From assembly GCA_002189035.1 (NCBI GenBank), contig CM007991.1, forward strand, positions 4,774,001 through 4,838,000: a stretch of 64,000 nt of DNA, read 5' to 3'. The first letter of the stretch is position 1. Every line of letters begins with the position of its first letter. A program made the translations under genes and the position numbers. Origin of the DNA: Utricularia gibba (Eukaryota; Plantae; Magnoliophyta). Below are positions 3,370 to 64,000 of this stretch, in pieces. Under the pieces are notes generated by a model. It ran no database searches, had not been told where the DNA came from, and saw nothing but the letters and a program-made list of their open reading frames with translations.

Positions 3370-5640
3370 TTATAGGTTCTTCAGATGCAGCTACATTGGA
3401 TGGCCTTTGGTGTGGGTTCGAACACTCCCTTGCAAACCTTAGCCATCCTTTGATCCAAGCATTCCTCGCAGTATAGTAAACATCCCTCGAGGCACGGGTT
3501 TTGTGAAGTTGTCTCCAAGTTGATCTTGTGTCTTTACATACTCCAATGTTACCTCCTTCTCAGCAATAGCAACACAGTCTCTAATGTAGTGGTATTTTGA
3601 TGTTATGCACTCGCTTTTTACATAAAAAGGCTAGATTTTTATTCAGCTCTATGGCAGATTTGTTATCAATCATGATTCTTGTAGAAGCAGTTTGTGCACA
3701 TCGGATTCCACTCAAAAGATTTATGAGCCAAACAACTTGACATATGCAATGATTTTGCGGTAATAAATTCAGTCTCACATGTGGATAAGGTAACCACGGA
3801 CTGCTTTTTAGAACTCCAACTGAAATCAGTATTTCAAATGAAGAATGCAAGCCCTGAGGTGCTGCTAATTATATCAATGGCAGCTCAACACCAGTGGAAA
3901 ATCCATAAAATGGATGTAAAATCTATATTTTTGAATAGGTTTCTGCAACAGAAGGTGGTACTTAAGCAACCTCAAATTAACAAACATAAGGTATTGAAGC
4001 TTAAGAAGCCTCTTTATGAGTTGAAGCAAGCACCACATGTCAAGAATATGTAGATTCATCATTATCTTGTTAAAAATCATTTCAAGAGATGTGCCTATGA
4101 GCATGGCTTATATGCCAGAATTAATGACTTGGAATTCATGTTAGCTAGAAGGAAGAAGGTACTTTCATTTCTCAAAGTAGGTTTGGCTGGCCTTAGAACA
4201 CTGTAAACCAATAGACACTCCAGTGGCTGTTGGCTTAAAAATGCATTTGAATGATTCAAGTGTGAGTGTCGATGCTACATGCTTTAAAAGCTTGGTTGAA
4301 AGTTTTATATATCTTACAAGTCTGAGACCTGATATTTTTTATGCAGTAGGCTTAGTCATTCGCTTCATAGAGAATCCAACTCTGTTTCATCTTACTGCTG
4401 CTAAGAGGAATCTGTATTATGTTAAGGGAACGTTGAACTTGGCCTTGTAGTTTTCGATTTTACCAGTAATATCTCTTTTGATTCTATACACCCATTTGAC
4501 TCCAATGACATTTTTGTTTGTTGGTTTATTGACCTACTGCCAAGTTTGATTCCTCCTGATAGCATTCATCTCATCTTCTATTGCTTTTCTCCATTCTGAA
4601 TTTTGGACAACCTTTTCAGAGCTCAGATTTTCTGATTTAGTAAATAAGCAATAATGAGAGAAATTCACAAGTTCTGTTGCCTCTTCATAGGATAATCTGC
4701 TTGAATTTTCACCAGCCTTAAAGATGGAAAGTCGACTACAAAATCATTAAGATAGCTTGACCATCTTCTAACACAACCATTTTGCACCAGATCAGATGCA
4801 GCAGGCTGTTGCAGGGGCTCCAGCTACTGTTGCTGCTGCGTCTCTTGTTCTGATGGCTACTAATCTTCAAGGGGATTTAATGAATCTGCTGCAATATCAT
4901 CAAAAAAAAGCTTCATTATCCATTGGGGAGGTTTCCAATTTCAACTTGCAGATTCATCAAACTCAACATCCTTGCTAATCACAACTTTATCTAAAGGACT
5001 GAAAAGTTTGTAGCCCATTGAAGTAGGGTCATTATCAATGAAGAAAAATTTCCTAGAACGATCATCCAACTCTGATCTTGTTTCTCTATGTATATGTGCA
5101 TATGCCACACACCCAAATACTCATGAATGAGTAACTTTTGGTTTAAAACCACTTCAAGCTTCTTGAGGAGTGGCTCCAGCAACACTTCTACTAAAACTTA
5201 TGTTTAGTAGATAAACTGCATAGTGGCTTCTGCCCAGAATTGTTTGGGCATGTTCTTAGTGCTGACTATAGAACCAAACATATTTAGAATTACGCCATTT
5301 TTTTGTTCAACCACACCATTTTGCTGAGGCATGTGAGCAAGGTCTTCTTAAACCAATTTCATCAGAGAAGGCCTAAAGTATTGCAGAGAAAATTCTCCAC
5401 CTCTGTTTGATCGAAGAGCTTTGATTAGAAGACAACATTGTCACCCAACCAAGGCCTGAAATTTCTTGATCGCCTAAAAAACTTTTGATTTCCTTGTCAA
5501 GATTTTCGAGAGTAATCATGAACAAGTAGTAAGAAATACTTGTGATTTCCTTTAGAAGTTGCGATAATTGAACCACAAACAACTCCATGGACTATTTCAA
5601 GAGGATTCCATGCTCTGAACATAGACGCTTTTGGAATAAT
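3370..5640 (-). mobile_element. Degenerate Ty1/copia element 1 (integrase, RT, RNase H) with an internally inverted RT segment
   Basis: Minus: integrase ~4980-5640; RT start EWRKAIEDEM..VIGVKWVYRIKRDITGKIENYKA ~4440-4660; RNase H STSG..SWSSKKQSVVTLSTCETE..IDNKSAIEL ~3500-3862. Plus: RT core LIISMAAQHQWKIHKMDVKS..LKKPLYELKQAP..LRPDIFYAV 3865-4440. Confidence 0.85.
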
Positions 5641-11104: not shown

Positions 11105-11910
11105 GTATGCTACAACGACACTAGAGTTATCCCCAAGTCCTACCTAAGACAAATAGAAAACTGGTTCCTTCAGCATCAGTGATGAACATAAAAACTGAGA
11201 GTAAATTTTGATGCATGAGCTATAGAAGTGTAAGTGTGCATGTCATTTCATCACTCAAATGTGCATCAGTAGATTCCTCTTTAGGAGTGTTTTCGAAAAC
11301 CTTATCTTATTGAATTGATCCCTCCAAAGTCACTTAAGACCACGGTTGCCAACCCATTTTTTTTCTCTTCTTTTTTTTTTCTATTTTTTTTTGGGTAGTG
11401 AAGGGGCAGCTTGTTCCAGACTAATCCGGGCTCACATTCAATGCCTTTTCTTTTTCTCAGTGTTGGGCAAGCACTCACACCTTATAAGACCAGTCTCCTC
11501 CGTACTCCTGCGGATTAGTTTTTCCCTACTCACCCTTTCACTACTTATTGAGTCCGCACATGCTCTTTTAATATGTGCTGCTTTTTAGGACTTGGGTCTC
11601 AATTTTTTTTCTTTTTCTTTTTTTCTTTTTTTTTTTCGACCCTTTATTCACCTCTCTTTTTTCGGTGGTTGGCAACCTGTTCCACAATGACTATGAAGTT
11701 CAATAATTCATATAAAAATAATCTATTGCACACTCCTTAGATTCCTCGGGTCATACACATGCTCTCATGAAATAAAAAGATAAAAACATGCTCACGGGTA
11801 TCAAAAAGGTTAACAAAGCTCATGCTACAGAATTCATCTAGCAGCTGTAATGTTCAATCACTTAGCCATCGGAAACAGTTTACTGCTACTAAACAAAAAT
11901 ATAGTATAGT

Positions 11911-13726
11911 AAATGGAGGTGCAGTCACTTGGAAGAGTTCTAAGCAAGAAACGACTGCTGATTCAACAATGGAAGCAGAGTACATTGCCGCCAGCGATGC
12001 TGCAAAAGAAGCTGTTTGGATTAAGAAGTTTGTCAGCGATCTAGGAGTACTCCCAAATGTTGAGGATCCTATACTCCTATATTGCGATAAAAATGGGGCT
12101 ATTGCAAATGCTAAGGCACCTCGATCACATCAGAAATCCAAACAGGTGCTTCGACGCTATCATGTGATTAGAGAGGTCATTGGTAGAGGCGATGTCAGAA
12201 TTAAGAAAGTGGACACAAAGGAGAATGTAGCAGATCCAATTACAAAGATGCTTCCACAAAAGGTCCATGAGATACACATAAAGTCCATTGGTATAGGATA
12301 CATGATTTATTGGCTATAGTACAAGTGGGAGATTGTTGGTGTATATGTTCTAGAGACAATCAATTCATTGGCAAATCTTATCCTTTAATGTTTACCTTGA
12401 ATTGTGATCAAGTTTACATCACTATTAAAATCCTCTACTTGATCTATGTGTTATAGAAATTATGATAAGATCATAATGTGAGATTCTTCAAGCACTTATA
12501 GTCAAGTTAAAAACTCCCTGGCTAGAGTATTTGTAAAATGAGGATATCACAAATACGGATAAGCTGGTACACATTGAGTTCCCTAAACTGTTTAGGCAAT
12601 GGTTCCCACAATTGATGTAATGAGATTACTAGAACCTATGTGTGGGTGTCGACTTGAGAATCGATTTATTGCACGACTCATCTTCGAGATGCTACTATGG
12701 GAAGCTAACCAAGTGTTAGTAGCAAGATCTCGAATATGACAGCCGTGCAAGTAAGCTTAGACTTGAGGTCAAGAAAGTTATCTTGATCTTAAGCTCACAT
12801 TTTTGCTCATTACTAATGGGAGTCTAACCATGGCTTGACTAGTATGGATGAGTACGGATGTGACTTCTTAAGGTTGGAGATAGTTGATTGATCAATAAAA
12901 GATTCATCACTCATGTTAGCGATGAGATCATATCTCAAGTAATTGCATCAAAGCCTAACATTAAGTCCTGGGCCCAGGGTAATGACACTCGAATTGTTTG
13001 AGTAGGTCATTGAGTGTTAGTGCTTAAATGCAATTATAAGTTCGATACATCAGAAAGACACACACCCATGTTCTGGTACCGAATGAGATATAAGTATGAT
13101 GAAAGATGTTCATTGCATGGTGGCTGGTCATGGAAAGACTCAATCAGTTCACCTGATTATTCTTTAATCTTGAGGATCATGATATGTTGCTAGACATCAC
13201 TCATGATCGATAATGATGGATTTGATTAATTATGATTTAATTAATAAATCTATTATTACGGCTTTGATTGAAGAAGCCTATAGGGTCACACACAATAGTG
13301 GAGTCAAAATAGAGAGTTATTTGATATGATTAATATTGATTAAACTCAAAATAAAAGATCTCATATAGATATGATTTGATATGTCACAAAATATCTATCG
13401 AAAAAAATTTAGATCTTGAGATCTGCTCCAAAGGTCTTCGTGCTATCTGAGATTGATCCATAAGGAGACATTTTTTCTACTAGCACCTGAAAAATTCGAC
13501 CACCATTCAAGAGCCTTGAGAAGGTTATCGATGGAGTGCTCCACGTGTGGATATTATAGGGGCCGTCTGCTATTGGCGGTTGGTGAACAACGGAGTCCTC
13601 TGAAAGGTATTTTTAGCATCCCTTTATCTGATGTATACCGTATTCCAAGATCTGCATTGGGAGTTTCTCAGAATTTTTAAAATTCCGCTGCTTTTGAGAC
13701 ATACGATGTCTACGAGAAACCAAACA
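11911..13726 (+). mobile_element. Angela-like copia 3' fragment 1: RNase H, PPT, LTR (12334-13726)
   Basis: ORF AVTWKSSKQETTADSTMEAEYIAASDAAKEAVW..LYCDKNGAIANAKAPRSHQKSK; PPT AAGTGGGAGAT then TGTTGG; LTR ends AAACA. Confidence 0.9.
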
Positions 13727-41896: not shown

Positions 41897-42612
41897 GTGA
41901 ATGGAAGATCCCTATAAATTGAATTCGACCTTGAATCTAAGAAACAGTAAAATTCAACAAATCAAGGTTCATCTCAGTTAGTGCTTCTGGACTCGTACAA
42001 GGAAATTGAGTAGATGGTTGATGTATGAGACTCGAGCCTATCTTTAGTAGCATGCATTCCCATCCGTGTCCCACCCCAGAAGAGTGCAGCTGCATGTCAT
42101 ATTTGATCCGAAGACCCAGAGCTAATTATCGACATTTTCGACTATCTGGACACATATTTCTAATTATTCTCTTTACCAAACATATTTGGTTCTAATCATA
42201 TAATAAGAACAAGAGATATTTCTCAATAAATCCCCTCATTCTTGGAGAATCAGAACTTATAATCATGAAATCAACTCAATCATCAGATTATAAGTTCATT
42301 CGGAACAGGGTTATCTTTCAAGAGGATTCACTCCATGTCAAGCCCCTCGTCCTCTAATTATCTCGAATAGTGTGTAAATCTAGATTGCACAATTTATCTA
42401 TTATGCCATTCATTAGCTTAATATTATTTCTCTGGAATTGAGTCTTTGATCGGACTCATTTACACATATGGCCATCCTTTCATTATCTTTCACATATCTG
42501 ATAAAATTTTTAAAAAGTGGATGGTCAGATTTTTAATAAACTTCTTTGATCCCAAAGAAGGGGGTTTCCTTTAGTATCCATCGTGAATTAATAAATAAGA
42601 GTGTTCATAGCA

Positions 42613-46366: not shown

Positions 46367-46955
46367 CAACGATAACTAATGAATCAACTAGACCTAGTGT
46401 TCTATTTTAGCATATAGCTAAAAAATCTCAAAGAAGAAAGATCGAGGAGTTGCTTGACATGAATTGTGTTTGATTCAAAATGAGTTTGTGTTTGTGTGGT
46501 GTTAATGCAAAAACAAAGACAACACCAAATTTAAGTGGAAACCCCGAAGGGAAAAATCACGGGCAAAACGTCACTCAAAGATGAACGGATTTTGGGGAAA
46601 TCCAATTACAACTACAAGCCATACTCATAAACTCAACTCACACACCCTAATCTTAGAACTCAACCTCCTTATATCTCGTAAATGGAGGTTAGTCTTTAAT
46701 GAAGAGATGGTTACCAAAATTTCGTAATTGATTGCTTATCTTAAACATGAGTCATAGCTTGTGGCTTGAAATAAGAAGAAATTGCCCCAACTAGGAAAAT
46801 GATGTTTTGTTCATTCCACAATGACTTCAATTGATCTCTCATCAATATTTCAACAAATTCCCCCCTTGATGGGAGATCACCGTGATCTCTCAAACAGAAT
46901 AATTCAATGAAGACTAGAGCCAGTTCAAATGAGTGACGTTTCCTCATGCCATTCA

Positions 46956-47220
46956 TCATTTCCGCTGAAGACCCATCAGGTCCAACAATTTTTGGAACAT
47001 GATGGAAGGGAGTGGCTTGGTTAAAGCATCTACTGCTCTCGTATCAAGGATATCCCTAATAAAGTGGTACCTTACATCAATGTGTTTCACCCTACTGTGA
47101 AACATGGGGTCCTTAGCCAAAGAGAGAGCGCTTTGGCTATCGCATACAATGCCTCTCATGGCCTCTTTCTTGTGTAGTTCAGAGAACAAGCCCTTCAGCC
47201 AAATTGCTTCCTTCACTGCC
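46956..47220 (-). pseudogene. Copia RNase H, 3' part
   Basis: AVKEAIWLKGLFSEL..VCDSQSALSLAKDPMFHSRVKHIDVRYHFIRD..DALTKPL. Confidence 0.92.
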
Positions 47221-47695
47221 AAAGCACAGTAGGTCCTTGGCCATCATAAGAGCGCTCAGCAAGGAACTCAACGCTCTCATGGTCTCTTCAGGTAAAGGGT
47301 CCTTGCTGTCCCGAATTTCTTCAAACATTGGCGTCAGAAGCTTCAGTGATCTAGCCAGATTCGTATATTGCTTCTTGACGCTGCTTCTATACTCAGATAT
47401 TGCAGATATTTCACCCACCAAATCGACTAGACTGAGCGATAAGGCGACTCGATCATCCTCCATTATCCGATCATTGACGTAGTGAGAGTTCAAGCTGCTG
47501 CCACAAATCCTCCATTATCCGGTGACGATTTGGAGCTCATCGTGGTGCACGAGACCAGCTAACTATCCGTTTCAATCCTCAACAAATCTCCGAACACTCA
47601 CCCGGATGCTGCAGTCAACGGGAAAACCCGAAAAGCTTAGCCAGATTAGCGCAAGCTGAGAGGTGGTATTGGTCGGGGTCCATGTCTCTCTCCTT
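47204..47695 (-). pseudogene. PUB13: Captured 5' fragment of a U-box/ARM E3 ligase gene (PUB12/PUB13/SPL11 class); CDS part 47204-47463, the rest putative 5' UTR
   Basis: MEDDRVALSLSLVDLVGEISAISEYRSSVKKQYTNLARSLKLLTPMFEEIRDSKDPLPEETMRALSSL..AKDLLCFGSEGS resembles Arabidopsis PUB13 N-terminus (..SLIDVVNEIAAISDYR..KKLCYNLARRLKLLVPMFEEIRES..GSKIYL) from memory. Confidence 0.85.
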
Positions 47696-49603
47696 TCCCC
47701 ATTTCTTGAGGAGTTTTTCGATCAATAGCAGTAGAGGGTGATCTATTAATGATAAAAGTGGCATAAGATGCTGCTTCTGCCCAAAACTTCTCATCCAGCT
47801 TAGCAGTGATCAACATACTTTGAACTCTTTCCATGATGGTTCGATTCATTCTTTCAGCCACCCCATTTTGTTGTGGGGTGTATCTATTTGTCTTATCTCT
47901 CAAAATTCCAGTAGCCTTGCAGAGTTCTTCAAAATCACCTAAACAAAACTCAAGGCCATTGTCTGTCCTAAGTTTCTTAACCTTCATATTTGTTTGATTT
48001 TCAATCATTATCTTGCACACTTTAAAAGTCTCTAAAGCCTCTGATTTATGCTTCAAAAAGAAGGTCCACAACTTTCTAGAGTAATCATCGACAATACTCA
48101 TCATATATACTGCTCCTCCCATAGATGGGCTATCTGTTGGCCCCCATAAATCAAAATGGATATAAGCTAAGGGGTGTGGGCTGTTGTGTATTCCTTTAGA
48201 GAACTTGATCCGTTTACTTTTTCCCAACACACAGCACTCATAGAAGTCCAGTTTACCTATTTCCTGCTCTTTTATCAAGCCTCTAGAACTTAATTCTTTC
48301 AGTCCTTGCTCACTCATGTGAGCTAGCCTATAATGCCACAATCTGGTTGTGTCACTCTCTGTTCTATCAGTGGTAATGTTAACATGACCCTTCTCCACTG
48401 TGCCCTATAATATGTAGAGGTTGCTTTGATTCCGAACTACTTTCATTACCACTAGTTTGCCCTTACAAACTTTGAGAGTTCCATCACAACCAGAAAATTT
48501 GAGACCTTTTTCCTCTAATGTACTTAGGGAAATTAGGTTTTTCTTGAGCTCCGGCACATGTCGAACATCAGTGAGTTATCTCACTATCCCATTGTGCATC
48601 TTGATTCTGATGTTGCCTATACCAGCAATCTTTCTTGAGGTGTTATCACCCATCACAATTTCTCCTGTCTCATGCCTTTCATAGGTAGAGAACCACTCTC
48701 GATTGGGGCATACATGGTAGGTGCACGCGCTGTCCAATATCCATGATTCACTTAATAGAGATAAGCCTTGTGACATTAGAGATAAGTGGGCTCCATTCTG
48801 GTTTAAACACTCAACAGCCAATACGTATCCATCATCATCACCATAAATGACATTGGCTTGACCATTATTTGTGTTCGTTGGCTTCCACTCTTTTTTCTCA
48901 GCATGAGCTTCTTTATTCTGAAGCTTATAGCAGTCCTTTTTTATATGCCCCTTTTTCTTGCAATAATTGCAGATTTTGTTGCGATGTCTACTCTTTGATC
49001 TATCTATCTTCTCATTTGATTGCTTTATTTCTTGAGAAATGTTTTCAGCTGCTCCTTTGACTCAAGCCATTCATAAACGTGATCTAAGCTGAGGGAGGTC
49101 TTTGAGTAGATGATGCTGTCTCTGAAAATTTCATAGGATGCAGGGAGAGAACACAATAGAATTAGAGCTAAATCTTCAAAGTCATACTTGACTCCAGCAG
49201 TATCCAAATCCACAATCATATCCTTAAATTTCGCAACATGTTCATCTAGAGAACCACCCTCTTGCAACTTGTGTGTATATAACCTTTTCTTTAAATGGAG
49301 CTTACTTGCCAAGGTTTTAGCCACACAAATTTGTTCCAGTTTGTCCCAGAGATCCTTGGTGGTCTTCTCTTTCGAAACGGCTGGCAACATGTCAGTAGAG
49401 AGATATAAATGGATGGTGGATCTTGCCTTCCTATCTCTGATTTCATTTTCCTCACTTGAAAAATTCTTGTTCATCTTCTCCTTTCCATCAATTACATCAT
49501 CCGGGTCTAGTTGTGTAAGCACAGCTTGCATCTGCATCTGCCATGTGACAAATCTTGTATTTTTCTTATCCAACTTTTGGATATCACACCTTACATTAGA
49601 CAT
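47696..49603 (-). pseudogene. Copia gag, protease and integrase, frameshifted; integrase cut after KTPQEM
   Basis: gag DRKARSTIHLYLS..LALILLCSLPASY; protease WILDSACTYHVCPNREWF; RLWHYRLAHMSEQGL; LRTDNGLEF..TPQQNGVAERMNRT. Confidence 0.95.
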
Positions 49604-50539
49604 ATCCGATGATCGGCTTCTTCACTAAACCTGTTTATATCAAAATCACCACAAACACAAAGTATGGCAGCAATAACACTCCACAAAAAGAACCACAACA
49701 CATAGATATTCACAATATCAATCCAAAAGTGAATATCACAGCCACAAGCTACAACCTGCTCTGATACCAATTGTTCTATTTTAGCATATAGCTAAAAAAT
49801 CTCAAAGAAGAAAGATCGAGGAGTCGCTTGACATGAATTGTGTTTGATTCAAAATGAGTTTGTGTTTGTGTGGTGTTAATGCAAAAACAAAGACAACACC
49901 AAATTTACGTGGAAACCTCGAAGTGAAAAAACCACGGGCAAAACGTCACTCAAAGATGAACGGATTTTGGGGAAATCCAATTACAACTACAAGCCATACT
50001 CATAAACTAAACTCACATACCCTAATCTTAGAACTCAACCTCCTTATATCTCAAAAATGGAGGTTAGTCTTTAGTGAAGAGAGGGTTACCAAAATTTCGT
50101 CTTGGAAGAGCTTTTCTATAGCTGAATACCGACACATCAGCTATAGGGTTGTTGACAAATAGAAAGCAATCAAATCAATTGATTGCTTATCTTAAACATG
50201 AGTCATAGCTTGTGGCTTGAAATAAGAATAAATGGCCCCAACTAGGAAAATGATGTTTTGTTCATTCCACAATGACTTCAATTGATCTCTCATCAATATT
50301 TCAACACCTAGGATAATAAGTTCAGAGCTTGGTCTTGCTTCACCATCAAGAAGTGAAAGAGGGCTTTGTCCCCAAGTTTAACTCAAACACAGCTCCTTTT
50401 TGTTTTGAGTGTGGTGGTGTCAAAAAAAATATCCAACAAGCATTAGCTCTCCCTAAAAAGGGATGATCCCATCGCACCTTACCCAAGGAAGTAAAGCACA
50501 CAGTGCTACTCTGTTATGAACAAAGATATCTTTGGAGGG

Positions 50540-50830
50540 TAATGTGGATTATCCTGATCTCACGATTGTGAAATTATCTAGTGCTCAACAAGGTCTAGAG
50601 TGAAGAGTTAATGCTAGGGATCAAGTGATTGAATGAGAATTGAAGGCTCTCTATGTCAGCTCTCCATACACCAAACATGTGAAAGCCAATGGAAAGAAAC
50701 CTGGACCAAGGCAAAGAGAATAAGAAGAAAGACAAGGAAAAGTTTTCTCCATGTAGACATTGCAAACAAAGCTCTCATTATTAGAATTATTCCTATTGGA
50801 GGCGAGATGTCCAGTGCAAAATATAGCATA
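50540..50830 (+). pseudogene. Copia gag fragment with zinc-knuckle region
   Basis: KKKDKEKFSPCRHCKQSSH..YWRRDVQCK resembles the copia FPPC.HC..GH..CW.RPD.KC motif. Confidence 0.55.
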
Positions 50831-50862
50831 GCGACCTTGTTTGCTATCAATGTCTCCCCCTT

Positions 50863-51231
50863 AGGAACACATCTCAATACTTTTGTACAGTACTGCTGCT
50901 AACCAACCCGGCTTTTAAAAATTTTAAAATATTTTTGCTACTCAAGAACACATCTCAAAGTTTATTCAATATACCAAATGTATGTGCTACTCAAGAACAC
51001 ATCTCAAAGTTTATTCAATATACCAAATGTATGTGCTACTTAAGAACACATCTCTAAGTTAAGAACACATCTCTAAATTAAGAAAATATATTTGAGATGT
51101 ACAATACTTTTTCTACTTAAGAACACATCTCAAAGTATAACATGGTCTATGTGCTCTTGAAAATATATTTGAGATGTACAATACTTTTGTATTAATGCTG
51201 CTAACCAACCCGGCTTTTAAAATTTTAAAAA
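50863..51231. repeat. Compound repeat array built on GAACACATCTC
   Basis: Motif at 50865, 50946, 50995, 51044, 51063 and 51121; 49-bp tandem unit; ~55-bp direct repeats at 50875 and 51179. Confidence 0.92.
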
Positions 51232-51399
51232 ATATATAAAAGTATATAGATAAAATATAAGTACATATTTATAAGACCCTAATCTCACCTCTCACTCTCC
51301 CCTTTTCATGCTATCTCCTCTTATGATGCTCTCAAAGTCTTATACTTTACATACTCACCCTGTGAAAACTATTTGAAAGCTAGATTAGGCAACTTGAGT

Positions 51400-52445
51400 T
51401 ACACTGAGTAAGCTTGTTGTGAACTTTGGTACATGACCGTGTCTGAAATTTCCAGAACAGCCAAGTGGGTTGACAAGTTTACAGTACCTTTACCCACAAC
51501 AACAAAATAGCTGCCATCACCAATTCAAACTGAGGACTTGTAAGCAAGAACCAATGATAGAAATTGAAATCTATCCCCAGCCATGTGAGAGGTGAAACCA
51601 GAATCCACCATCCATTGTTCCACAGAAGCCTAAAAGCACTCTTCCATGACAAACACATGTTAGATCATCCACGGGAGTGTCTTCATCATAAAAGACATTG
51701 TTGACTTGATTTTCTTGATTAAAATTCTTCATTGTGGATATAGACGTGGTGCACACCCTGTCAACATGCCAAAGAGTCTTGCACTTTCCATAGAAAGCAT
51801 CCGGTCGATAAAAACAATATTCACTAGAATGATTTGATTTTCTACAAAACTAGAAAGGTGGAAAACTGAGCCTTTGTTTGATAGGCAAACACTTGACTTT
51901 TCCCCCAGTTTTGCTGACAGATAAGGTCTTTTTATTCCCTTTAAAATTACTCATCTTATCAGCATGAGCCACAAGAGCCTTTTCCACACCAGCCATGTGA
52001 GACTTATCTAAGGCCAATTACTATTATGGTCAATTACTGACCACATCCATGATGCAATCTATATAGCCTTTTAGGAAATCAGACTCAACCATGCGTAAAC
52101 ATTCAAATTGTCTTCTTAAGGTGAAGACTCGCATGTACTTGGTGCAATCATTCCCTTTGAATTCTTCCTCAATCAGATACCATGCCTCACGAGCAGTTTC
52201 AGCCACCATGATCCTTGTAAAAACCGAATCGTCCACAGCTTTATGAGTCAAACTAAGAGCATGATCCCTCCTTACTAAATGTTCTTTGTGCGCTATTACT
52301 TGAGCCGGAGTAGCATTGGTCCTCAAAAGAGGTGCCTCACTTTCTTCAATAGCATCCCAAAGCTGCTGCCCACCTAGATAAGTTCACATTTTTACAGTTC
52401 AGGCATGATAAAGCTCTCCATTGAACCATGGAGTAGCATGAGAGT
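51400..52445 (-). pseudogene. Copia gag-protease remnant
   Basis: PWFNGELY..LWDAIEE..HKAVDDSVFTRIMVAETAREAW..LRRQFECLRM; WMVDSGFTSHM at ~51580-51620. Confidence 0.85.
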
Positions 52446-53428
52446 ATGACTTCTAAGACATACCTTCTGACGTGGTTATGTTGTTAAAAATATTTCCGAA
52501 ATTGGAATGCAAAGAACACTTCGTATTGATCAAACTGGTGCAAAAAAAAAAAAAAAACAGTGACCTGACACATGCGTTTTTGTAGTTGGCTTATCACCGA
52601 AGTTTAAGCACTCTACTCACACTACAACACAACTGAACAAGACTAATTCAATTTTAAAAAAAAACCGACACACAACAAACTCCACCAGATGCTCCTATAG
52701 CTCAAAATCTGCTAAGTAATCACAGTAGCAGCCTTAACCTTTTCCATGGGATTACTCTTGCCAGCTGTTGAAGTAAGTGGACTACTTCAAACAATATTCA
52801 ACAGAAATTTAGATCCAAGCATAAGGTCCAGCAAGTGATTGGGCATGTCCACATACATGAACATGTAAGGGATGAGTATGGATTAAGTGAATGAAAAGTT
52901 GATGTGAACAAGCACAAATAAAGCAAAAAAACGTGAACCATTTCAGATGATGATGAAAAAAGAGGATAGAGGTGGATTGAGGTTAACCACAAGGGATCAC
53001 TCTTGAGAGAAAGACTTGGGCTTGATCCATCTCCAAGAAGTTTGATCTCTTATCAAGCTCATCAGATGTAACGGTAGATTGTAGGAAGGTTACTGGTTTT
53101 TGTACCTCTTGTATTGATTAACTTAATGGTGGTGTGGTTTAAATCATGTACTTGTTGATTATTTTGTGTTGCTAGAGAAAAGTTGGTTTTTTTCTCGGTT
53201 CTCAAGTTTTCACTTACCAAAAATCTTGTGTTTTTTGTTTTTCGGTTTTCTTTCCACCAATAACTTGGGAGAATAAACAAGATAAAACTCATCCAACTAG
53301 AATCTGGTTTCTATAGAAATCCGAGGATGATTTCTTAACACCAGCTCCAACAATATCTAGATCGGAGGTGAGAGCAAGTGTAAGCACATAATTTTTGTAA
53401 TATTAAGATATCAATTTTTGTGTCTTTG

Positions 53429-53642
53429 TGGTCGAGACGCACAGTGCCTATAGTATCCATCGTTTACGTCTAGGACTACTGGGGTATCTAATTCCCCAAT
53501 ACAGTGCTTAGTGTTCTTTCCGATTTCTATGCATTTCACCGCTCCACCACATGTAAAGGGTTGAGCCCCGGGTTTGATGGCGGACTTAAAAAGCCACCTA
53601 CAAACGCCTTACACCAATCATTTCGGATAGCGCTTGCATTTC
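53429..53642 (-). pseudogene. rrn16: Plastid 16S rRNA fragment with internal deletions
   Basis: GTATCCATCGTTTACG.CTAGGACTACTGGGGTATCTAAT, GCATTTCACCGCTCCACC and GGCGGACTTAAAAAGCCACCTACA are reverse complements of plastid 16S segments. Confidence 0.9.
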
Positions 53643-53759
53643 TATTGCAACAGCTACCGCAGTTTTCTTGATCTGCCCCATTGGTCAAGTTTTTTTTCTG
53701 ATAGTATGCCTTTAGGAATTTCTGTTACTTTCAATTTTATGATTGTATTCCAAGTGAGC
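53643..53759 (+). pseudogene. psbA: psbA fragment 1
   Basis: [34 protein letters not shown] vs D1 [37 protein letters not shown]. Confidence 0.9.
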
Positions 53760-53775
53760 TGGTTACTTTGAGGGA

Positions 53776-55476
53776 TGGTCTACCTAAATTTAAGAAATGG
53801 ATTTAAAAAATTTTCATTATTATTTTTATTTAACTACAAAATATTATAAAGATTGATATAAAATATTTAATTTATACTATTAAATTTTCAAATATGTTAT
53901 GCTCATAAAACATGAATATGCAATCTTTTGGTTACAGAAGTAATAGGAAGAGTGAATGATGGTAATTATGCAAGTGCACAGAAACCGTCAAAGTAATAAA
54001 ATAAGATCGTATCCATAGGGAATTGTTATTGGAATATTCTTTTCAAAACAAAGAGTTAAAAAGATTGGAAACAAAAGAAAGATTGGTTTTTGAAGACAAC
54101 AAGAAAGTAGCCTTGGATCTAAAATCCACCTTACTTGAAACTCGCCTTTGCGTGTGTACAAACCTTGAAGACTGACCTGCTTGCGTAAGCTTTGGGGGAG
54201 TTATCCTAAAATAGTGCTACTCGGTGATCGTTACAGCACTGTCCCTTGTTTTGTAGGATTATGGAATCAACCACGCCACCAGAGCCATTTCACCTCTTGT
54301 GATAACCTATGTTTTCCCCACACTCAAATCTAACTCATACACCTCACACCTCGCAGACAGATTAGACAGAATGTGTCTTACCAACGATGTCCGATTGAGC
54401 CCTTCTCCTTAGGTGCTTGAGGCCAATCTTTGATTCTACCACACTCCCTTAGGATTATATGGTACTAATGATCACGTTGGTAAAGAAAACGTTGCAAAAA
54501 ACAGAATCAGACCTCAAATTAAATGCTGAAAAACATAGTAAGACAGTCACGCGCGCAGGACTTGCGCAAGCAAGGCTTCACAGCAGATCCTCAGCTGCTA
54601 GCGCTCACACGCGCATGCTTGACTCTAAACAACAAAAGTTGATGAAAAACGAAGGGAAAGGAATCAAAAGCATGCTATACTCGACTCTAAACCCTAGATT
54701 GACTCTCTGGTCGTCCACCACTTCGACTCCCTTAGGTCTTCGCGTTTGGATCTTTATATAATGGTGGGGATTTGCCGGGCTTTCTTGATGGGCTCGCATC
54801 AAATCTTCTATCCGAATCTTTGAAGATTTGATACAAATCTTCTAGGATGAGATACGAGTTTTCCAAGATAAGATGTGAATCTTATCTTATCCGAGAATCT
54901 TCGACCGAGTCTTCATCTCCGGATAGACCAAATCTTAGCCTCCATCAAAGTAGCTCGAAAATCCTCCAAATTATTCCAAATTCGTCCTGAAAAATCACAA
55001 AACATACTTTCCCTCCAAAAAGATCAAAGTGGTATGAAAGATATAAAATTCTTCTAAAAACATAAAGAAAGTAGGATAAAAAGAATGCAAAACTCATGTA
55101 AGAGAGTTCTAAAAACCACAAATATAAGTGACACAAAATCACTTATCAGTGAACAATCAATGACATATTATACATGTTCTAAAACTCAGTAGTTATACTA
55201 AATAAGTTAGTTATTAATTTGGATTTCAAATGATATGCACGTACCAAGAACATTTTCAAAAGAATGTTTATCGTCATTTTTATATTAAAACTATATCATT
55301 TTTCTAAATTCAATAATATTAGTTAAATATTCTATATCAATCTATAATATTTTTTATGTAGTTAAATTATAAAATAATGAAATTAATACCTATTTTTATG
55401 TAACTAAATGAATGATGACCAATTTGCAAAGAATTTTTTGAGGGTACCCATGTCTCAAATTTAGATGGAGAGAGAC
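53776..55476. mobile_element. AT-rich MITE-like foldback (~510 bp net) with long imperfect TIRs, split by a solo LTR
   Basis: 53784-53893 matches the reverse complement of 55302-55465 (CTAAATTT.AGA.ATGG; TTTCATTATT..ATTTAACTACA..AATATTATA..GATTGATATA.AATATTTAA); right end TTTAGATGGAGAGAG is Stowaway-like. Confidence 0.55.
53957..55148 (-). mobile_element. Family-A gypsy solo LTR (1192 bp)
   Basis: TGAT..ATCA ends; perfect TSD GTGAA at 53952-53956 and 55149-55153. Confidence 0.93.
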
Positions 55477-55495
55477 GGGGCATATTTCAAATATT

Positions 55496-55732
55496 CACCC
55501 ATTTCACGTGTTGGGTGTAGCTGGTGGATTCGGCGGCTCCCTATTTAGTGCTATTCATAATTCGGTAAGTTCAAGTTTGATCAGTGAAACCACACCAAAT
55601 GAATCTGCTAGTGAAGATTACAAATTTGGTCAAGAGGAAGAAACTTATAAATATTGTAGGCGCTCACGGTTATTTTGGCCGATTGATCTTCCAGTGAGTT
55701 TCAACAATTTTCATTCGTTAAATTTCTTCTTA
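55496..55732 (+). pseudogene. psbA: psbA fragment 2
   Basis: HPFHVLGVAGGFGGSLFSAIH..SSLISETTPNESASEDYKFGQEEETY..AHGYFGRLIFQ..SFNN. Confidence 0.95.
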
Positions 55733-56644
55733 CATTTTGCTCTCTACTTAAAACTTCGAATCTGCCAAATCCAAAAAAAGGAAAATGCTCAATGAATTTC
55801 TTTATGTGAAAAATATTACTTGATATTCATAGGCAAAGGCATAGGTTTTGTTTCTCTCAACTGAACCAAGTGTGATGGGATGGAATGCTAGACGTTTGGT
55901 TATTTCTCCCCCAGCCACAATGAAACACCCCATGGATGCGACCAATCCCATAGATACAATCATTTAATAAGAACAAGATATACTAGTGTTTGATGTTAAA
56001 AGGTGATGAGTTAGTTCTTGTAAATCTGGTGAAACCAACCGAAACTGCTGAATTGGGATTGGAAGTCTACGGTGACAAAAGAAAAAAATGAAAACCCAAG
56101 ACTTATAACTATTCAAGCCCATCACTTGATGTTGTCACAGAAACCAACCACAGAACAAGTGAGAAATACTCAAAAGTTACAGAACGGCTAGTTTAATATT
56201 TCAGTCTATAAATGTTGTAATAGCAAACACAATGATGTATGAAAAACCTTTCCGTCTAGAGCAGCTCAAAGTCTCAGCACTTGACGTACAAAAAACAAAA
56301 CCTCTAGTTTGGAGGTGTTGAAATCAGGCTCAAGTTCAGGAGCTACACGCTTGATTCCTTTCATTTGGAAGATGTGGATGAACAATACATAGAATCAAAA
56401 TGAATTACTGTAAGAACAAGGAATAAATCTGGAAGTGTTCCTCCTGATCCCGTATGGAATGAATCTTTATATAAAAGCCATGCAAAAGATCCCCATTACT
56501 CTTCAACTCTTTAATATTGTCACACAATTAATCTCAATGAAATTCTATAAATACCCATTACTCTATGTTTCTTTTACTTATCTAATACATCTGTTTACAC
56601 TTGAAGAGACCTGTTTACGCTCGGCATGACCCATGTTTACACTC

Positions 56645-56735
56645 AGAGATATCTTTCTCGACCAATCCCATTCTTGGACAACTAGAAATGATCCTTTTCA
56701 AGTTAGAATTTGTTCATTTGGAATCTGGGTTCTTT
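56645..56735 (+). other. Plastid inverted-repeat-like fragment; its upstream part seems to lie at 55958-55980
   Basis: GAGATATCTTTCTCGACCAATCCC..GATCCTTTTCAAGTTAGAATTTGTTCATTTGGAATCTGGGTTC; related to 42195-42256; plastid origin is from memory. Confidence 0.55.
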
Positions 56736-57085
56736 TATATTTTTATATAATATTAATTTTTTCCCATATTTTTTGTTTTATATAATCCCTTCAATCCACG
56801 TGTGATTTTTAGAATTTTTCCACTGAACGAAGGGTATTAAATCCATCAAATTTATTTTTCGATGAAAAGTCCTCTATTTTTTTCGTCGGTTTTTTCCTCT
56901 TCCTCTAATAAAAGGTAATTACCCATAAATAGTCCCAGCCACCACTTTCAACATCCAAGCATTTGGTGCACCCTCGTACGTGTTCGACCAGTCAAAGCTG
57001 ACCGAGTTGGGATGTTTGAGACACGTTTCGAGACTATCCACTGAACGTGTCAATAAGGCGTTTTGTTGAACGAGCTTTTGCTAAG

Positions 57086-58415
57086 CTAGAAGATAATCTT
57101 AGAATATTGAAATAAGACCAAGTAATAAAGTCTACACAGCCGTTGGAAGTGGGCAACTCAATCAGCCCTGGTTTCGTGGGTTAGTTAGGCTGTTGAGATC
57201 TGAAACTTGGTTTCATTACATGATCTCATTAGATTCTGTTTTCATGTGAAGTTTGTTATTTTTGAATCTATAAAAGCTGATGTCCACAGCTTGAGTTTGT
57301 ATCTCCTCCATTGCAATAAATTTTATTCTTCATTCATTTACTCTTCCAATCCAAAATCCTCATTTTGTTGCTGTTTTTCATTGCACCATTTTCTGTGAGA
57401 GTTCATCCTATTTTTTTATCTATTAAGTGGTATCACATACTGAGGTCCACCGTCCCTGCACCCTATAGATGGGTGACCATTCAGGGAATGACCCTGAGCG
57501 TGCTTCTGAGAACATAGACGCATATGTGCGCTCTCACTGGTACTACACATGGACACCATTGAAGTACTCACACCAGAGAAGAAGAGGGCTGCCGGTATCA
57601 TGCTCGGCACCATGTGTGCAGTCATGACGGCTAACTGCAGCCTCACCAACAACGACTTCATCCCCGTTGAGAAGAACCCTACGGTGATCTCAATGAGGCA
57701 GAATCCAGTTATGTTCTGGAAAACCTTCACATAATCTCTCAACACATGATATTTGACCCAAATGTGCTTAGTTTTCCCCAACATAACTGGATTCTGCCTC
57801 ATTGAGATCACCGTAGGGTTCTTCTCACCGGGGATGAAGTCGTTGTAGGTGAGGCCGTACTTAGCCGTCATGACTGCACGCATGGTGCCAAGCACGATAC
57901 CGGCAGCCCTCTTCTTCTCTGGTGTGAGTCCTTCAATGGTGTCCATGTTCAGGTAGTACTAGTGAGAGCGCACATATGCATCGATGTTCTCACAAGCACG
58001 CTCAGGGGTCATTCCGTGAATGGTCATCTATCTATAGGGTGCAGGGATGGTGGACCTCAGCATGTGATACCACTTGATAGATAAAAAATTAGGATGAACT
58101 CTCACAGAAAATCGTGCAAGGAAAAACAGCAACAAAAATAAGGGATTTGGGTTGGAATCGTAAATGAATGAAGAGCAAAATTTATTGCAATGGAGAAAAT
58201 ACAAACATAAGTTATGAACATCAGCTTTTATAGAATCAAAAGTAACAAACTTCACATGAAAACAGGATCTAATGATACCATGTAATGAGACCAAGTTTTA
58301 GATCTCACTAGCCTAACAAACCCGCGAAACCAGGGCTGATTGAGTTGCTCACTTTCAACGGCTGTGTAGCCTTTATTACTTGGTCTTATTTCAATATTTC
58401 AAGATTATCTTCTAG
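57086..58415. repeat. Long inverted repeat (foldback): arms 57086-57724 and 57771-58415, 46-nt loop
   Basis: Arms are reverse complements at about 90% identity; each holds an LTR-like end with TCTATAAAAG-type TATA, TGGTATCA, a coding fragment and a copia RNase H piece. Confidence 0.97.
57740..58072 (-). pseudogene. Unidentified coding fragment fused to copia RNase H (mirror copy at 57428-57724, plus strand)
   Basis: Two-arm consensus WYHMLRSTIPAPYRWMTIHGMTPERACENIDAYVRSHWYYLNMDTIEGLTPEKKRAAGIVLGTMRAVMTAKYGLTYNDFIPGE, then KNPTVISMRQNPVMLGKTKHIWVKYHVLRDYV (RNase H-like). Confidence 0.65.
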
Positions 58416-58639
58416 AGTAATGGTTATATATTCAACGTTCGTTGAATATATGAAACTCCTTATTGACGCGTGAGGTGGAGGGGTGGTTTCAACTCCTATG
58501 GGTCACAAGTGGAGTTGACAGTGCGCACTTTGCGCTAGTTTGAACTACTCCTTCTCGGGCGATGATGCCGAGATGCTCGAGAGGATGAGTCTTGGAGGCT
58601 CGGAGGCTCGGACAGATGTCTCCTTGTGACCCAACTTCA

Positions 58640-59200
58640 AACCGAAGTAGACCCCCACTTAATGCTATCGATGCACAACTCTATTAGTTGTGCATCAGAC
58701 TATTGGGTAATCTTGCCTAGGGATCCGAGAGTTCTACAACTCTCTTCACCCGGTAGCATTCATAACTTTTTCTTTTTCATGGGATTTATTTCTCTTCTGA
58801 TGACTTGCATATTTCTTAATATAAGTGCGTTCTTGTGTGTGGATGTTGAGTTGTTGAAATGCAACAGCAGTCAGGGCAATAATAGCTAGACTTCTTGTGT
58901 GTGGATGTTCATCCTTGCAACCTAGGAGTAAGTTAATAGCTCGGTGTAATGATCAGGATAATTTTGCGTACTGTTGGGGAATTACCTTATAAGGATGTGA
59001 CACTCTTCCATGATGCACGAAATGCATGACTTTTTCTCTTGATCATTTTCACGAGATAGCAATATGTTCAATATAGTCATATTAGTGCATTCAAGATTTC
59101 TTTTATGTAAGATGGCATGCGTTGTTCTTTCATGAGACACTGGTTGTCAAGAAAATAGAGGATCATAAGGTTTTATCGTGTATTCATGTGTTTTTCTGAT
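58640..59200 (-). mobile_element. Possible Athila-type 3' non-coding remnant
   Basis: Minus TTAAGTGGGGG PPT-like motif at ~58650-58662; otherwise unassigned. Confidence 0.3.
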
Positions 59201-59209
59201 TTGCGACAT

Positions 59210-59712
59210 CAGCCAATAAAAAATGGAATATGAAATATAATTTCTAATACCACATCAGCCAATATTTCAAAACTTACTGCTATTTCTGTAGAACTATATA
59301 AACCAATACGCAAAACTCTCATTAAAAGAAAAATAGAAGACCCTATTACACAATCAACTTTATACCTAATTAAAGCATTTTTTCCTACTCGTATAAACAC
59401 ACGAGAATTAATTCTAACTCCCACATGAGAAAATAAAGAAATGAAATAATTGAGAATCGCAGAGTTATCATCCGTGCATATAAATTAGCCAAAGTAGTGA
59501 TGAATCCTGCCTTAGGCACAGTCCATCTATTCTCAATCCAAACAGTGGATCCAATTGTAATCAAGAACTAGTGGATAATCCGATTGGAAATGATAAGAAA
59601 ATGCACAAGTCATAACTCTAAGATATATATGGATATAGTACATAACACATTACTCTATTTTCTATATGTGAAACAAACCCACAATTATTGTTAAGCATGG
59701 AAAATTATGCAT
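59210..59712 (-). pseudogene. ndhD: ndhD 5' half, plastid-derived, with many deletions
   Basis: ATG CAT AAT TTT CCA TGC TTA ACA ATA ATT; TATCATTTCCAATCGG; GAATAGATGGACT; ATGTGGGAGTTAGAATTAATT; GSSIFLLMRVLRIGLYSS..LEIIFHI. Confidence 0.88.
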
Positions 59713-59869
59713 GATATATTTGGTTCAAAAAACTCAGAGTTTTGTCGTAAAAAAAAATGAAATGGATTCAATTAAAAAATTTTAAACCGTAGTAATAAAG
59801 TAGAATCATTTTATGAGTTGTTTCCTACCATACATAAACTTGACCACTCAAGAGATCCATTAGAAAGAT

Positions 59870-59967
59870 AGATTCACATCACTTACAATATCAACACAAT
59901 CTTCCGCCCTTGGAGCCGAAGCAATTTGGTTAGTCTTATACGCATATCATACTTTACTCAAGGGACA
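59870..59967 (-). pseudogene. psaC: psaC fragment
   Basis: Minus CAAATTGCTTCGGCTCCAAGGGCGGAAGATTGTGTTG..TGTAAGTGATGTGAATCT encodes QIASAPRAEDCV.CK.CES. Confidence 0.85.
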
Positions 59968-60752
59968 TTAAATATATACCTCATAAAATTTCGGTCTAGT
60001 AAAAAGATTTCAATACCATTGGGATACCTCTACTTAATGTAATTTTTTTTTTTAGTAATGAGGCCCAAAATACTTATGTTGTTATGCTTTTACATGTAAT
60101 ACCATATCGTTATTAGCCCACTATATTCTTAAATAAATAAATTTAATATATGCAATTTATTTACTCAACAACATGAATTGGTTAATGCGAGTGGATTTTA
60201 TATAACCATAAATTGATCAAACAAATAGAAAATAGGTACTTAAAACAAGTATTTCTTAAATTACATCCAAGAGAATATATTTGGAATTGATCAATCTAAA
60301 CTGAAACCTAAGTTTTTATAGTGAATTTTCAATAGGAATTCCAATGTAAGTATTATTGTTTCCTTTATTTTATTATTTTTATTTAAATTACATATTTTTA
60401 AAATTTATTATTGACGTTGTATGACAATTGAAACTATTATTTTCAATTGGAATTACAATGTAATTAATATTTGTAGTATTATGAATCATTCATGAATATC
60501 ACATGAAAATGATTAAAATATTTATAGTCCTTAAATAATTACGTACTTGCAAGACAGCTACAAATTATGAGTTCCATAGTATATATATACATATAACTAA
60601 TCCCAATTCAAAAGCCAAATAAATTGTATTCGAAATTCTAAAATTTTGACCGGATCCACGTAAATTCATTCTTTAGAAAAAAGAGAATTAATAGTATTTT
60701 TATGGTAATGTATAAATGAGCATTTAATCTAAATCTCTCTCTTATTTACACT

Positions 60753-61834
60753 TGATGGTGATTTTGCAAGTGAATAGAAACCGTCGAAGTAATAAAATAA
60801 GATCGTATCCACAGGGAATTGTTATTGGAATTTTTTTTTCAAAAAAAGACTGAAAAAAGAACAAAAAAAAAGAAAGATTTGGTTTTAAAAACAATAAGAA
60901 AATTGGCTTAAGATCCAGAATTCACCTTGCTTAAAACTCGCCCAAACTTGTGTGTGTAAACCTTGAAGACTGACCTGCATGCGCAAGCTTTGAGAGTGTT
61001 ATGTTAAGATAGTGCTACTCGATGACCGTTATAGCATCATCCCTTGTTTTGTGGGATTATGGAATCAACCACGCCACCAGAGCCATTTCACCTCTTATGA
61101 TAACCCATGTTTACCCCACACCCAAATCTAACCCCTACACCTCACACCTCGCAGACATATTAGACAGAATGTACCTTATCAATGATGTCCGATTGAGCCC
61201 TTCTCCTTAGATGCTTGAAGCCAACCTTTGATTCTCCCACACTCCCTTCGGGTTATATGATATTAGACAGAATGTACCTTATGCGCAGAACTTGCATAAG
61301 CAAGGCTTCACCACAGATCTTCAGCCGCAAGCACCTACACACTCAGACTCGACTCAAACATGGAAATAGACACGAAAATAGGAAAGATTCAAAGTAAAAT
61401 TGGTCAAAGACATTTCTAATGATTGAGAGGGTGGGGTATTTATAGGAAAATAGATCCAAGTCTTTGTATTGAGCTTATTAGATGGGCTTGGATAAGATAT
61501 TCTATCCAAATCTTTTATCCAAATCTTTAAAGATCTTCTTCACATATCTATCTTATCCACGAATCTTGGATCAAATCTTCATCGTTTGACCGACTCTTGG
61601 GCTGGGATTCGCGGCCCATCAAGTCCATAATTTGGTGGATCTTGTTTCTTCTCAAATTGATCCAAAAATACCCTAAAAATCCATAAAATACATTTTATCT
61701 CCAAAAAAATCAAAGTAGTGTAAAAGATGAAAAATCAATTGAGAATAATGAGAAAGTGGGGTCTAAGATAAGTAAAAACAATACTCAATAGTAATGGAAG
61801 AACATGCTTTGGAACGACACAAAATCAATTATCA
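60753..61834 (-). mobile_element. Family-A gypsy solo LTR (1082 bp)
   Basis: Homologous to 53957-55148; perfect TSD ACACT at 60748-60752 and 61835-61839. Confidence 0.93.
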
Positions 61835-62359
61835 ACACTAAAATTAAATATGTTTTAATTTTGAAAGAAATAATAATTAAATTTAATAAAAAGAATATTT
61901 CAGTAAAAATAACATTGAAAAATAAAAAACTTTACTTTTAATTTTAAGCTTTATTTAATATAAATTTAATAATATTTCTACTATAACATATTCTATTTTT
62001 AAAAAATAAAATATATTTTAGAACTTTTCCAGAATATTTCTTATGACTGAAAAAAATAATTAGCAATGGAAAAAAGTAAAAATTAAAATAAATTGTTTGA
62101 TATATGTATCACATAATATTGATTATCTACGAATAAGTTTATTTACTTGATATTTCTAGATATTATAAAAATGCAATATTGATTTGTTACTAACAGACCC
62201 TATTTTTTGCATCTATCATTGCAAATTGATATCCCATGCTCAATAAGCTTGAGAGATCTAGTTCTTTAGACCTCCAAAGAGGAGCTAATAAGTCAGTACG
62301 GGAGAGTAAGGTAAAATACAAACAACAAATAAAAGTAAGGTAAATAACAAATAAGGACG

Positions 62360-62990
62360 TCAGAGAAGCATCGCAAATGCACATTCTAGTGCTTGATATT
62401 TTAAATTTTTTATAAAAAAATGTAAGCATTGAAATGCCACATTTGAAATATATAATGAAATCTGTGCAATCCCACATTGGAGAGAATAGGGTTCTGCAGT
62501 TAAGTGCAATCTGTGCAATCCTAGCTTATATATATATATATATATATTAATAAATGTATATTTGCAGTACTTGTGATATTTTTAATGTTTTATATAAAAA
62601 AAGTAAGTACCTAAATGCACATTTGTGGTGCTTATAATTTTTTTATAAATGGTGAAGCACTGCCAACACACATTTGCAATCCTTGTGATATTACTAAATT
62701 GAGAGAATCGCGCCGTGCTACTTATTTTTTTTAAATAATTATTTCTTTTATAAATGAGCATCGAAAATACAAATTTGTACTATTTGTTAAATTTTTATTT
62801 TTTTTAGAGAAAAATATTACCACCCCAATGCATATTTGCAGTACTTGCAATACTTTTTTATAAATGGGGCTCGCAATTTTTTAAAAGAAAATGGGAAAAG
62901 CATCGCCAATGCACATTTATTGTGATAATTTTAATTTTAGAGAATGGGTCGCCAGTTTAGTGCAATCCACGGCCCCAATTTATTTTTTTT
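62360..62990. repeat. Degenerate motif array AAGCATCG.AAATGCACATTTG with TTTTTTATAAA spacers
   Basis: Variants near 62366, 62423, 62552, 62603, 62655, 62755, 62826 and 62898. Confidence 0.65.
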
Positions 62991-63399
62991 AAATTTTTTT
63001 TCATTTTTAAATTACCATGTTGCTTTAAAAGAAAAAACATTTGAAAAACCTTCAATGAAGTCTTTGAAGTTTCCCATTTAATTACAAGGAAAAAGAATGA
63101 ATACAATTGTTTGGATTTGATCATTCCATTCGCCAACATGGTGCATTAGGGGCCAATGAATTACTAATTTTAGAAAATGAGATCATGCGGTTTAATGCAA
63201 TCTGTACTAACCTTTTTTTATTAAAAATAGTTTTTAAAAATAAATGAACACGTTGATTTATAAAAAAAACATTTGAAAGATCTATAATGAAATCTTTCAA
63301 CTTTATATTTAATTATTAGAGAAAACAATAAGCATATCGAATTTTTTATTTGAGTAGTGAGTTGGCTTTTGAAGGAACTATAGAAGCAAATGAAGATCG

Positions 63400-63600
63400 A
63401 TAACTTGCTAAATGATCTTTCAATCATCTGATACGACTTGCATCATGTTTGAGAGACAAAAATAATTCATGATGAACTGATTTTATGAACAAACAAAGAG
63501 CAACATACCATAAGGGATCTCCTTTCTCCATACCATCTATTGATTCCAAAACTTGGACACATTTCTCCATTGTGAATTTTCCTTTAAAGTAATATGATAA
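63400..63600 (-). pseudogene. C-terminal remnant of a Harbinger-associated Myb/SANT-like protein
   Basis: FTMEKCVQVLESIDGMEKGDPLWYVALCLFIKSVHHELFLSLKHDASRIR*LK resembles the YSI..CI.VL..MEG.E.GS.LY..AL.LF....RE.FL.L....R..WL C-terminal motif. Confidence 0.6.
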
Positions 63601-64000
63601 ACATTAAAATATCATCATTTCCTGTATAAATTTGGCAACTGAATCACTATTGATGGAGCATGCTTTCTGTTTTTTTTTTTTGGAAGATGTGAACTGCTGT
63701 TGCTCTCGTTGTTCAAATGTATGAAGAACTTCTTCATTGTAGGAGTATAGAAATCATCAAGACAAGGTATTAGTTAGGCATTCAAACCTGTTTATTCACT
63801 GATTTCTACATCTCCATCATCAATTTCATGTGGCAGAATTCTTGAACTTGCAATGTACATCATTACTTATTCACTTTAAGGGAATGAAACATGTCAACAT
63901 CGACATAATATTTAACGAAAAACACAATTGACAGCAAGCTTCAAAGAAAAACAGAATTCATTTAATATAAATGAATATATTAAATAAGATCTTAGTAAGC

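Follow-up and report, generated by a model that had tools for sequence, protein, structure and literature searches.

A retrotransposon-derived foldback with inward-facing LTR ends in the genome of Utricularia gibba

We analyzed a foldback at positions 57086 to 58415 of a 64-kb stretch of Utricularia gibba DNA (the whole stretch is called the window here, and all positions refer to it) and found that it is derived from a retrotransposon, with LTR ends that face inward. Its anatomy indicates that it is probably the decayed inverted duplication of a 5' fragment of one Ty1/Copia-type copy, comprising an LTR, a putative primer-binding site (PBS), a piece of ~170 nt, and the C-terminal portion of RNase H. 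No protein is encoded by the locus, which is of an ordinary kind, another instance of a well-known class: inverted duplications derived from transposable elements are widespread among plant genomes, and hairpin-siRNA loci of such a build are an established class. Our main results are corrective, in that a captured gene is not supported, the palindrome appears to be old and neutral, and the only targets visible for it are relatives of its LTR.

Extent of the inverted repeat and its LTR ends

A repeat search resolved the foldback into four collinear inverted pairs, which span 57086-57724 and 57771-58415, are 89 to 94% complementary, and leave 46 nt (57725-57770) between the innermost arms. When the region 56700-58800 was compared with the window by blastn, 57086-58415 matched its own reverse complement in one reverse-strand match, with 89.2% identity over 1339 columns, and no further copy of the foldback was found in the 64 kb. 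The original prediction of ~640-bp arms at ~90% identity around a 46-nt loop is borne out by both searches. It had also placed weak homology ~50 bp further out, and this too was recovered: in a gapped alignment of the left arm against the reverse complement of the right arm, homology extends across an indel-rich stretch to 57037 and 58479. The outer extension, TCCAC..ACG.GTCAATAAGG.GTTT at 57037-57063 and 58453-58479, is 27 nt long with 81% identity. Outside these limits, no arm homology above that of shuffled sequences was found (local score of 18, versus a shuffle mean of 15.3 and maximum of 26), and the flanks, TCGAGACTA and GGGGTGGTT, have nothing in common that could be a target-site duplication. 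The full arms are ~690 and ~710 nt long, and the whole palindrome measures 1.4 kb. The indel-rich stretch of the right arm also contains a local palindrome of 26 nt (58426-58451; ATATATTCAACG/CGTTGAATATAT type, 92%), where the left arm has only TTGAACG.

The features of the foldback, with the evidence for each in parentheses, are as follows.

56981-57425, plus strand: left-arm LTR, full length, from TGTTCGACC to CTATTA (family boundary at ~56980, sequence reading)
57426-57435, plus strand: AG spacer and PBS core TGGTATCA of the left arm (sequence, alignment)
57436-57602, plus strand: inner piece of the left arm, GC3-rich, with a 4-nt deletion relative to the right arm at 57546/57547 (alignment)
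57603-57724, plus strand: Copia RNase H tail of the left arm, which stops at codons ..NPVMFWKT (tblastn against Copia matches, arm alignment)
57725-57770, minus strand: spacer, which continues the right-arm RNase H frame (..KTKHIWVKYHVLRDYVKV) (translation, profile match at 57722-57865, fold)
57771-57892, minus strand: Copia RNase H tail of the right arm; with the spacer, 48-60 residues of the C-terminal half of the domain (profile, BLAST, HMMER)
57893-58064, minus strand: inner piece of the right arm, in frame with the RNase H tail, with an ATG at 57946 (translation, GC3)
58065-58074, minus strand: PBS core TGGTATCA and AG spacer of the right arm (sequence, alignment)
58075-58479, minus strand: right-arm LTR copy without the first 56 nt, indel-rich at 58416-58452 (alignment, no homology past 58479)

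The LTR is AT-rich, and the TATA-like box that had been predicted in each LTR-like half of the arms is present, reading CTATAAAAG at 57268-57276 with its mirror at 58225-58233; the left LTR also contains AATAAA at 57315-57320. To this prediction our analysis adds that the left LTR is whole, starting at 56981. A boundary of the form ..CTATCA-AG-PBS had been described for both arms. The right arm does read CTATCA, AG, and TGGTATCA, but the LTR of the left arm ends in CTATTA. In both arms the TGGTATCA core lies 2 nt past the LTR, at 57428-57435 and, as its mirror, at 58065-58072. We take this 8-nt core to be the start of the tRNA-iMet PBS of plant Copia elements; of what we assume to be the Copia PBS consensus, TGGTATCAGAGC, only these 8 nt fit, and the CATAC that follows departs from it. 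The window contains no tRNA gene with which the PBS could be compared.

Three DNA runs from two studies showed the LTR part to be multicopy, with a depth of 4 to 15 times the local background over 56981-57403. A sharp family boundary lies at ~56980, beside the TG at 56981. Contigs break or start at 56980-56982, with loose ends in several runs; depth at the boundary rises from ~6.5 to 26-50 in run X1; and paralogous contigs cover 57012. The alignment of one paralogous contig ends at 57415, 10 nt before the LTR end, with the loose end ..CATCTATCA, after which the contig has either a diverged PBS or flank; the LTR terminus CTATCA of the right arm recurs in a paralogue's loose end. The family boundary, the contig breaks, the paralogous contigs, and this loose end together indicate that the left LTR is complete (56981-57425); the part of it that is duplicated in the right arm is only 57037-57425. 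Over the U5 portion of the stem, relatives of the LTR family are 90 to 95% identical. In the DNA runs, depth over the inner stem (57404-58105) does not exceed that of a single copy, so the inner structure is unique to this locus at an identity of at least 90%. We found no direct copy of the LTR in the 64 kb by blastn and no polypurine tract or 5-bp target-site duplication. Thus, with neither a direct LTR copy nor a duplication of the flanks, the locus is a fragment and not an intact element.

Coding remnants in the inner stem

Inside the PBS, the inner part of the arms is ~300 nt long and GC-richer than the LTR. In the right arm, one frame can be followed from the PBS to the spacer, with two in-frame stops (58028-58030 and 57959-57961) upstream of the ATG at 57946; after this ATG, the frame is open through the spacer into the left arm antisense. 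The original prediction had assigned ~250 bp in each arm to a foreign coding sequence and a further piece to RNase H. The RNase H piece is present and is larger than was claimed, in that a third to half of the supposedly foreign sequence is Copia RNase H (48-60 residues). The remaining ~170 nt had no match.

The protein query consisted of the first 75 residues from the ATG, 57946 down to 57722. In an exhaustive HMMER search of 1.84 billion representatives, which covers only the last 18 to 27 codons of the ~170-nt piece, this query gave 18 matches at E ≤ 0.001 in the whole library, with Copia matches down to E = 6e-7; the 26 codons upstream of the ATG are broken by stops into pieces of at most 22 residues. 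Sixteen of the 18 matches were checked, and all of these are Copia RNase H tails that align to the ORF from residues 19-22 to residue 75. For P0002 the Copia tail is visible by tblastn only, and Pfam finds Copia domains (RVT_2 and rve) in one of the eight matches scanned, P0003. BLAST gave 37% identity to P0005 over 60 residues (E = 2e-10), with the query reading LGTMRAVMTAKYGLTYNDFIPGE-----KNPTVISMRQNPVMLGKTKHIWVKYHVLRDYV, and an RNase H profile built from 13 matched segments aligned to 57722-57865 at 34 bits over profile positions 72-119. Copia RNase H makes up 144-171 nt of the inner part, spacer included, and domain searches found no gag, integrase, or RT in the foldback. Judged from these matches, the Copia pol identity of the locus is that of the C-terminal half of RNase H only. 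The best match, P0001, is a repeat protein of 6209 residues (32%) that covers the RNase H-tail part; it is unrelated and was rejected as a plausible source gene.

We found no match for the 75-residue query in Pfam, PDB sequences, or a word-index protein search, and in ESM Atlas the matches were confined to unnamed eukaryote clusters and a fragment of Copia RT. For the ~170-nt piece, searches of Pfam, PDB, the word index, metagenome contigs, and the rest of the window found no relative. As for gene capture, no non-Copia relative of the internal sequence was detected with Pfam, PDB, ESM Atlas, the word search, HMMER, or metagenome contigs. GC3 is 0.63 in the ~170-nt piece versus 0.65 in the RNase H part, and the two are in the same frame, so richness in GC3 is no mark of foreign origin. 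The in-frame, GC3-rich state of the piece is compatible with a coding origin, which may lie in Copia or in a host gene, and the piece may represent leader sequence, a segment of pol that has diverged, or captured material. LTR retrotransposons that carry gene fragments exist, for example, maize Bs1, and the present arms resemble this type in that an LTR and a putative PBS precede non-gag sequence that shares its frame with a retrotransposon domain. However, this class requires a host-gene homologue, whereas none was found here and 48-60 residues are Copia RNase H.

Two other readings of the inner part were rejected. By eye, a W-x5-D-x5-T-x-E spacing recalls the SW..KQ...ST.E motif of Copia RNase H, as if the whole inner piece were diverged RNase H, but an N-terminal RNase H profile scored -2.2 on the inner piece, and 1250 of 2000 shuffles were as good. 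An antisense gene in the left arm (99 open codons) had a recognition score of 1036, versus 3147 for the sense frame, was classed as non-protein, and belonged to no family.

Decay of the arms and potential to form hairpin RNA

In 639 aligned positions, the arms differ by 34 transitions and 21 transversions (55 substitutions in all). Divergence is nominally higher in the LTR part, where a proportion of 0.103 of the sites differ, than in the inner part, with 0.067. At the substitution rates commonly used for plants (1.3e-8 or 7e-9 per site per year), this divergence corresponds roughly to 3 to 8 million years. In the ORF that begins at the ATG, 10 of the 12 changed codons are nonsynonymous, with 10 changes over 137 nonsynonymous sites versus 2 over 40 synonymous sites; the right arm has in-frame stops, and the 4-nt deletion in the left arm shifts the frame. 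These codon changes, stops, and deletion indicate that there has been no constraint at the protein level since the duplication, and from their sequences the arms look neutral in their decay.

The predicted fold of 57300-58200 has a free energy of -724 kcal/mol, versus a shuffle mean of -246 (z = -66), and consists of a nearly continuous stem; according to this model, a read-through RNA would form a very stable long hairpin if transcribed. Read-through from either of the inward-facing LTRs, or from outside, would give a stem of at least 400 bp, which plant Dicer-like enzymes could possibly cut into siRNAs. Endogenous inverted repeats that are transcribed give rise to 21- to 24-nt siRNAs via DCL2, DCL3, and DCL4, and some such loci, Mu killer and IR71 among them, act in trans (PMC10827316). 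The stem had been proposed as a possible trans-silencer of the source of its foreign gene. This proposal is not supported, as protein and metagenome searches found no source gene for the stem, and with no source gene known, no trans-target can be named. The only multicopy match of the predicted siRNAs could be the U5 end of the locus's own LTR family, not a host gene.

A functional hairpin-siRNA locus, in which transcription from the LTR promoters and Dicer-like processing lead to silencing of the Copia elements of the LTR family or of a source gene, is in our judgment unlikely. The length and stability of the stem are in keeping with such a function, as are the TATA-like box that each LTR retains facing the stem, the membership of the U5 part in a multicopy LTR family (90-95% identity), so that targets exist for that part, and the fact that the class is established (PMC10827316). 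However, the runs that contain the stretch include no RNA run, the unique part of the stem has no source gene that we could find, and the arms appear to decay neutrally, with no excess of compensatory conservation. In addition, the LTR promoters date back millions of years and lie in a repeat-rich, probably methylated setting, with a CpG observed/expected ratio of 0.5-0.76. Such a function would also add to the reading of the locus as a foldback duplication and would not replace its anatomy. One putative RNA run (X10) gave only partial matches of 33 to 51 nt to dispersed repeats, which continue into unlike sequence. With regard to a MIRNA or proto-MIRNA gene, no Rfam family was found in 50000-64000 at E ≤ 0.1.

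It is very unlikely that the locus is an active "killer" of its own Copia family, with siRNAs from the U5 and PBS of the candidate hairpin silencing multicopy LTR relatives. If true, this would be a natural equivalent of Mu killer among retrotransposons, one that has lasted for millions of years, and abundant hairpin siRNAs would make the locus another natural case of a broken retrotransposon turned against its own family. Like Mu killer of maize and endoIR loci such as IR71 of Arabidopsis (PMC10827316), the foldback arose by inverted duplication, with rearrangement, of the 5' region of a transposable element, and its predicted read-through transcript is, as in the Mu killer type, a long hairpin with homology to the 5' end of that element. 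Mu killer itself came from a DNA transposon, uses a flanking promoter, and acts on MuDR, and its siRNAs and heritable silencing have been demonstrated. In contrast, the foldback described here is a Copia fragment with arms that are 7 to 10% diverged, and it is known from DNA sequence alone.

Origin of the inverted duplication and its surroundings

The duplicated unit begins 56 nt into the LTR and ends within RNase H, and we infer from this anatomy a mechanism that starts with a break inside the RNase H region. The 3' end at this break would have folded back on its own strand, and once resected, it would have annealed to a short inverted repeat and copied ~0.7 kb outward. Copying would have halted 56 nt before it reached the start of the LTR, after which the new end would have been released and joined to the far side of the break. 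The window lacks the remainder of the element, namely the end of pol, the polypurine tract, and the 3' LTR, which would have been lost at the duplication or earlier. At the base of the spacer, CACAT (57728-57732) and ATGTG (57762-57766) lie in RNase H codons, and their 5-bp pairing could reduce the loop to 29 nt. No empty site or allele predating the duplication was available for comparison, and a search of the loose ends of paralogous contigs against the window for an empty site gave nothing informative.

Foldback priming at breaks produces inverted duplications with short spacers, and the foldback inversions described at double-strand breaks in yeast and human cells share with the present locus the inverted copies, a spacer of tens of nucleotides, and a small, naturally occurring inverted repeat at the spacer base, which here is CACAT/ATGTG (PMC10622511, PMC7467729, PMC3907307). 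Those described in yeast and human cells are mostly large and result in dicentrics or telomere capture, whereas the foldback here is a local copy of 0.7 kb amid unrelated flanks. Since the locus is millions of years old, microhomology at its junctions can no longer be read with confidence. Either arm may have served as the template: the left arm has the complete LTR, while the spacer is contiguous with the right arm; because recombination between the arms flips the spacer, its orientation is weak evidence on this point.

The same arrangement could have arisen from two separate, head-to-head insertions of one non-autonomous Copia derivative, with one copy landing in the RNase H remnant of the other and the 3' parts of both deleted afterwards. 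Nested insertions of the same family are common in plant genomes, the two LTR copies are unequal in completeness, and the LTR parts differ nominally more than the inner part (10.3% versus 6.7%), all of which is in line with such a history. We nevertheless give it only a slim chance of being correct. The inner part is single-copy in the DNA runs, and no mobile family of such a structure was seen; both copies stop in RNase H with no more than 46 nt between them; and neither copy has a 3' LTR, a polypurine tract, or a target-site duplication. The single-copy inner structure and the shared stopping point within 46 nt make two insertions less likely than a foldback duplication of one copy.

Contigs from three runs and two studies (X3 comes from a different study than X1) bear on whether the palindrome is correctly assembled. 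Contigs with 0 mismatches cover 57147-57546 and 57798-58267 in X1, 56982-57312 and 58079-58308 in X3, and 58239-58740 in X4, an X1 contig over 58319-59500 has one mismatch, and both outer junctions between arm and unique flank are crossed by contigs. The mismatch-free contigs for each arm indicate that the two diverged arms are separate single-copy sequences, each in its place. None of the short-read runs examined (coverage of ~3-7) has a contig that spans 57547-57797, so the center of the palindrome depends on the assembly alone, and this gap would accommodate an artefact in which two diverged paralogous fragments were misjoined head to head at 57724/57725. Such a misjoin is nonetheless highly improbable. 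Both arms are single-copy, independent data connect each of them to its own unique flank, and the spacer carries on the right-arm reading frame unbroken. Coverage of the runs is low, and hairpin centers are commonly lost. The arms, which are 89 to 94% identical, are also unlike a hairpin-adapter palindrome, and their divergence of 7 to 10% means that they are not a palindrome made from a chimeric read, which would be near-identical. A mobile foldback or long-TIR DNA transposon was rejected on the grounds that the inner stem is single-copy and has no target-site duplication.

The window contains other repeats in the vicinity of the foldback. Two direct repeats of 0.7 to 1.2 kb, 6.8 kb apart (53957-~55150 and 60753-~61820), bracket it; they start with TGATGG, are 87.6% identical in their core, and are indel-rich in their distal part. 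They may represent the LTRs of an older element whose interior is noncoding, and no clear PBS, polypurine tract, or target-site duplication was found for them. A separate Copia element lies on the minus strand at 46392-50306, with LTRs (46392-46855 and 49766-50306) that are 96 to 98% identical and a canonical PBS, TGGTATCAGAGCAGG, on the minus strand at 49759-49773. In the blastn comparison these LTRs proved unrelated to that of the foldback, and the element's RNase H match (47028-47222) likewise starts in the middle of the domain, at profile position 59. More Copia RNase H remnants occur, on both strands, at 3469-3863, 5988-6417, and 11888-12265, the last of which is an almost whole domain at 89 bits. 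We also observed very high contig depth at 56692-56744 (to 218) and 59257-59338 (to 118) in a run labeled plant metagenome. Both intervals are touched by the putative RNA run as well, and a loose end beside 56692-56744 matches 42229-42255 of the window at 96%; these intervals are probably a small dispersed repeat or an organelle-like piece.
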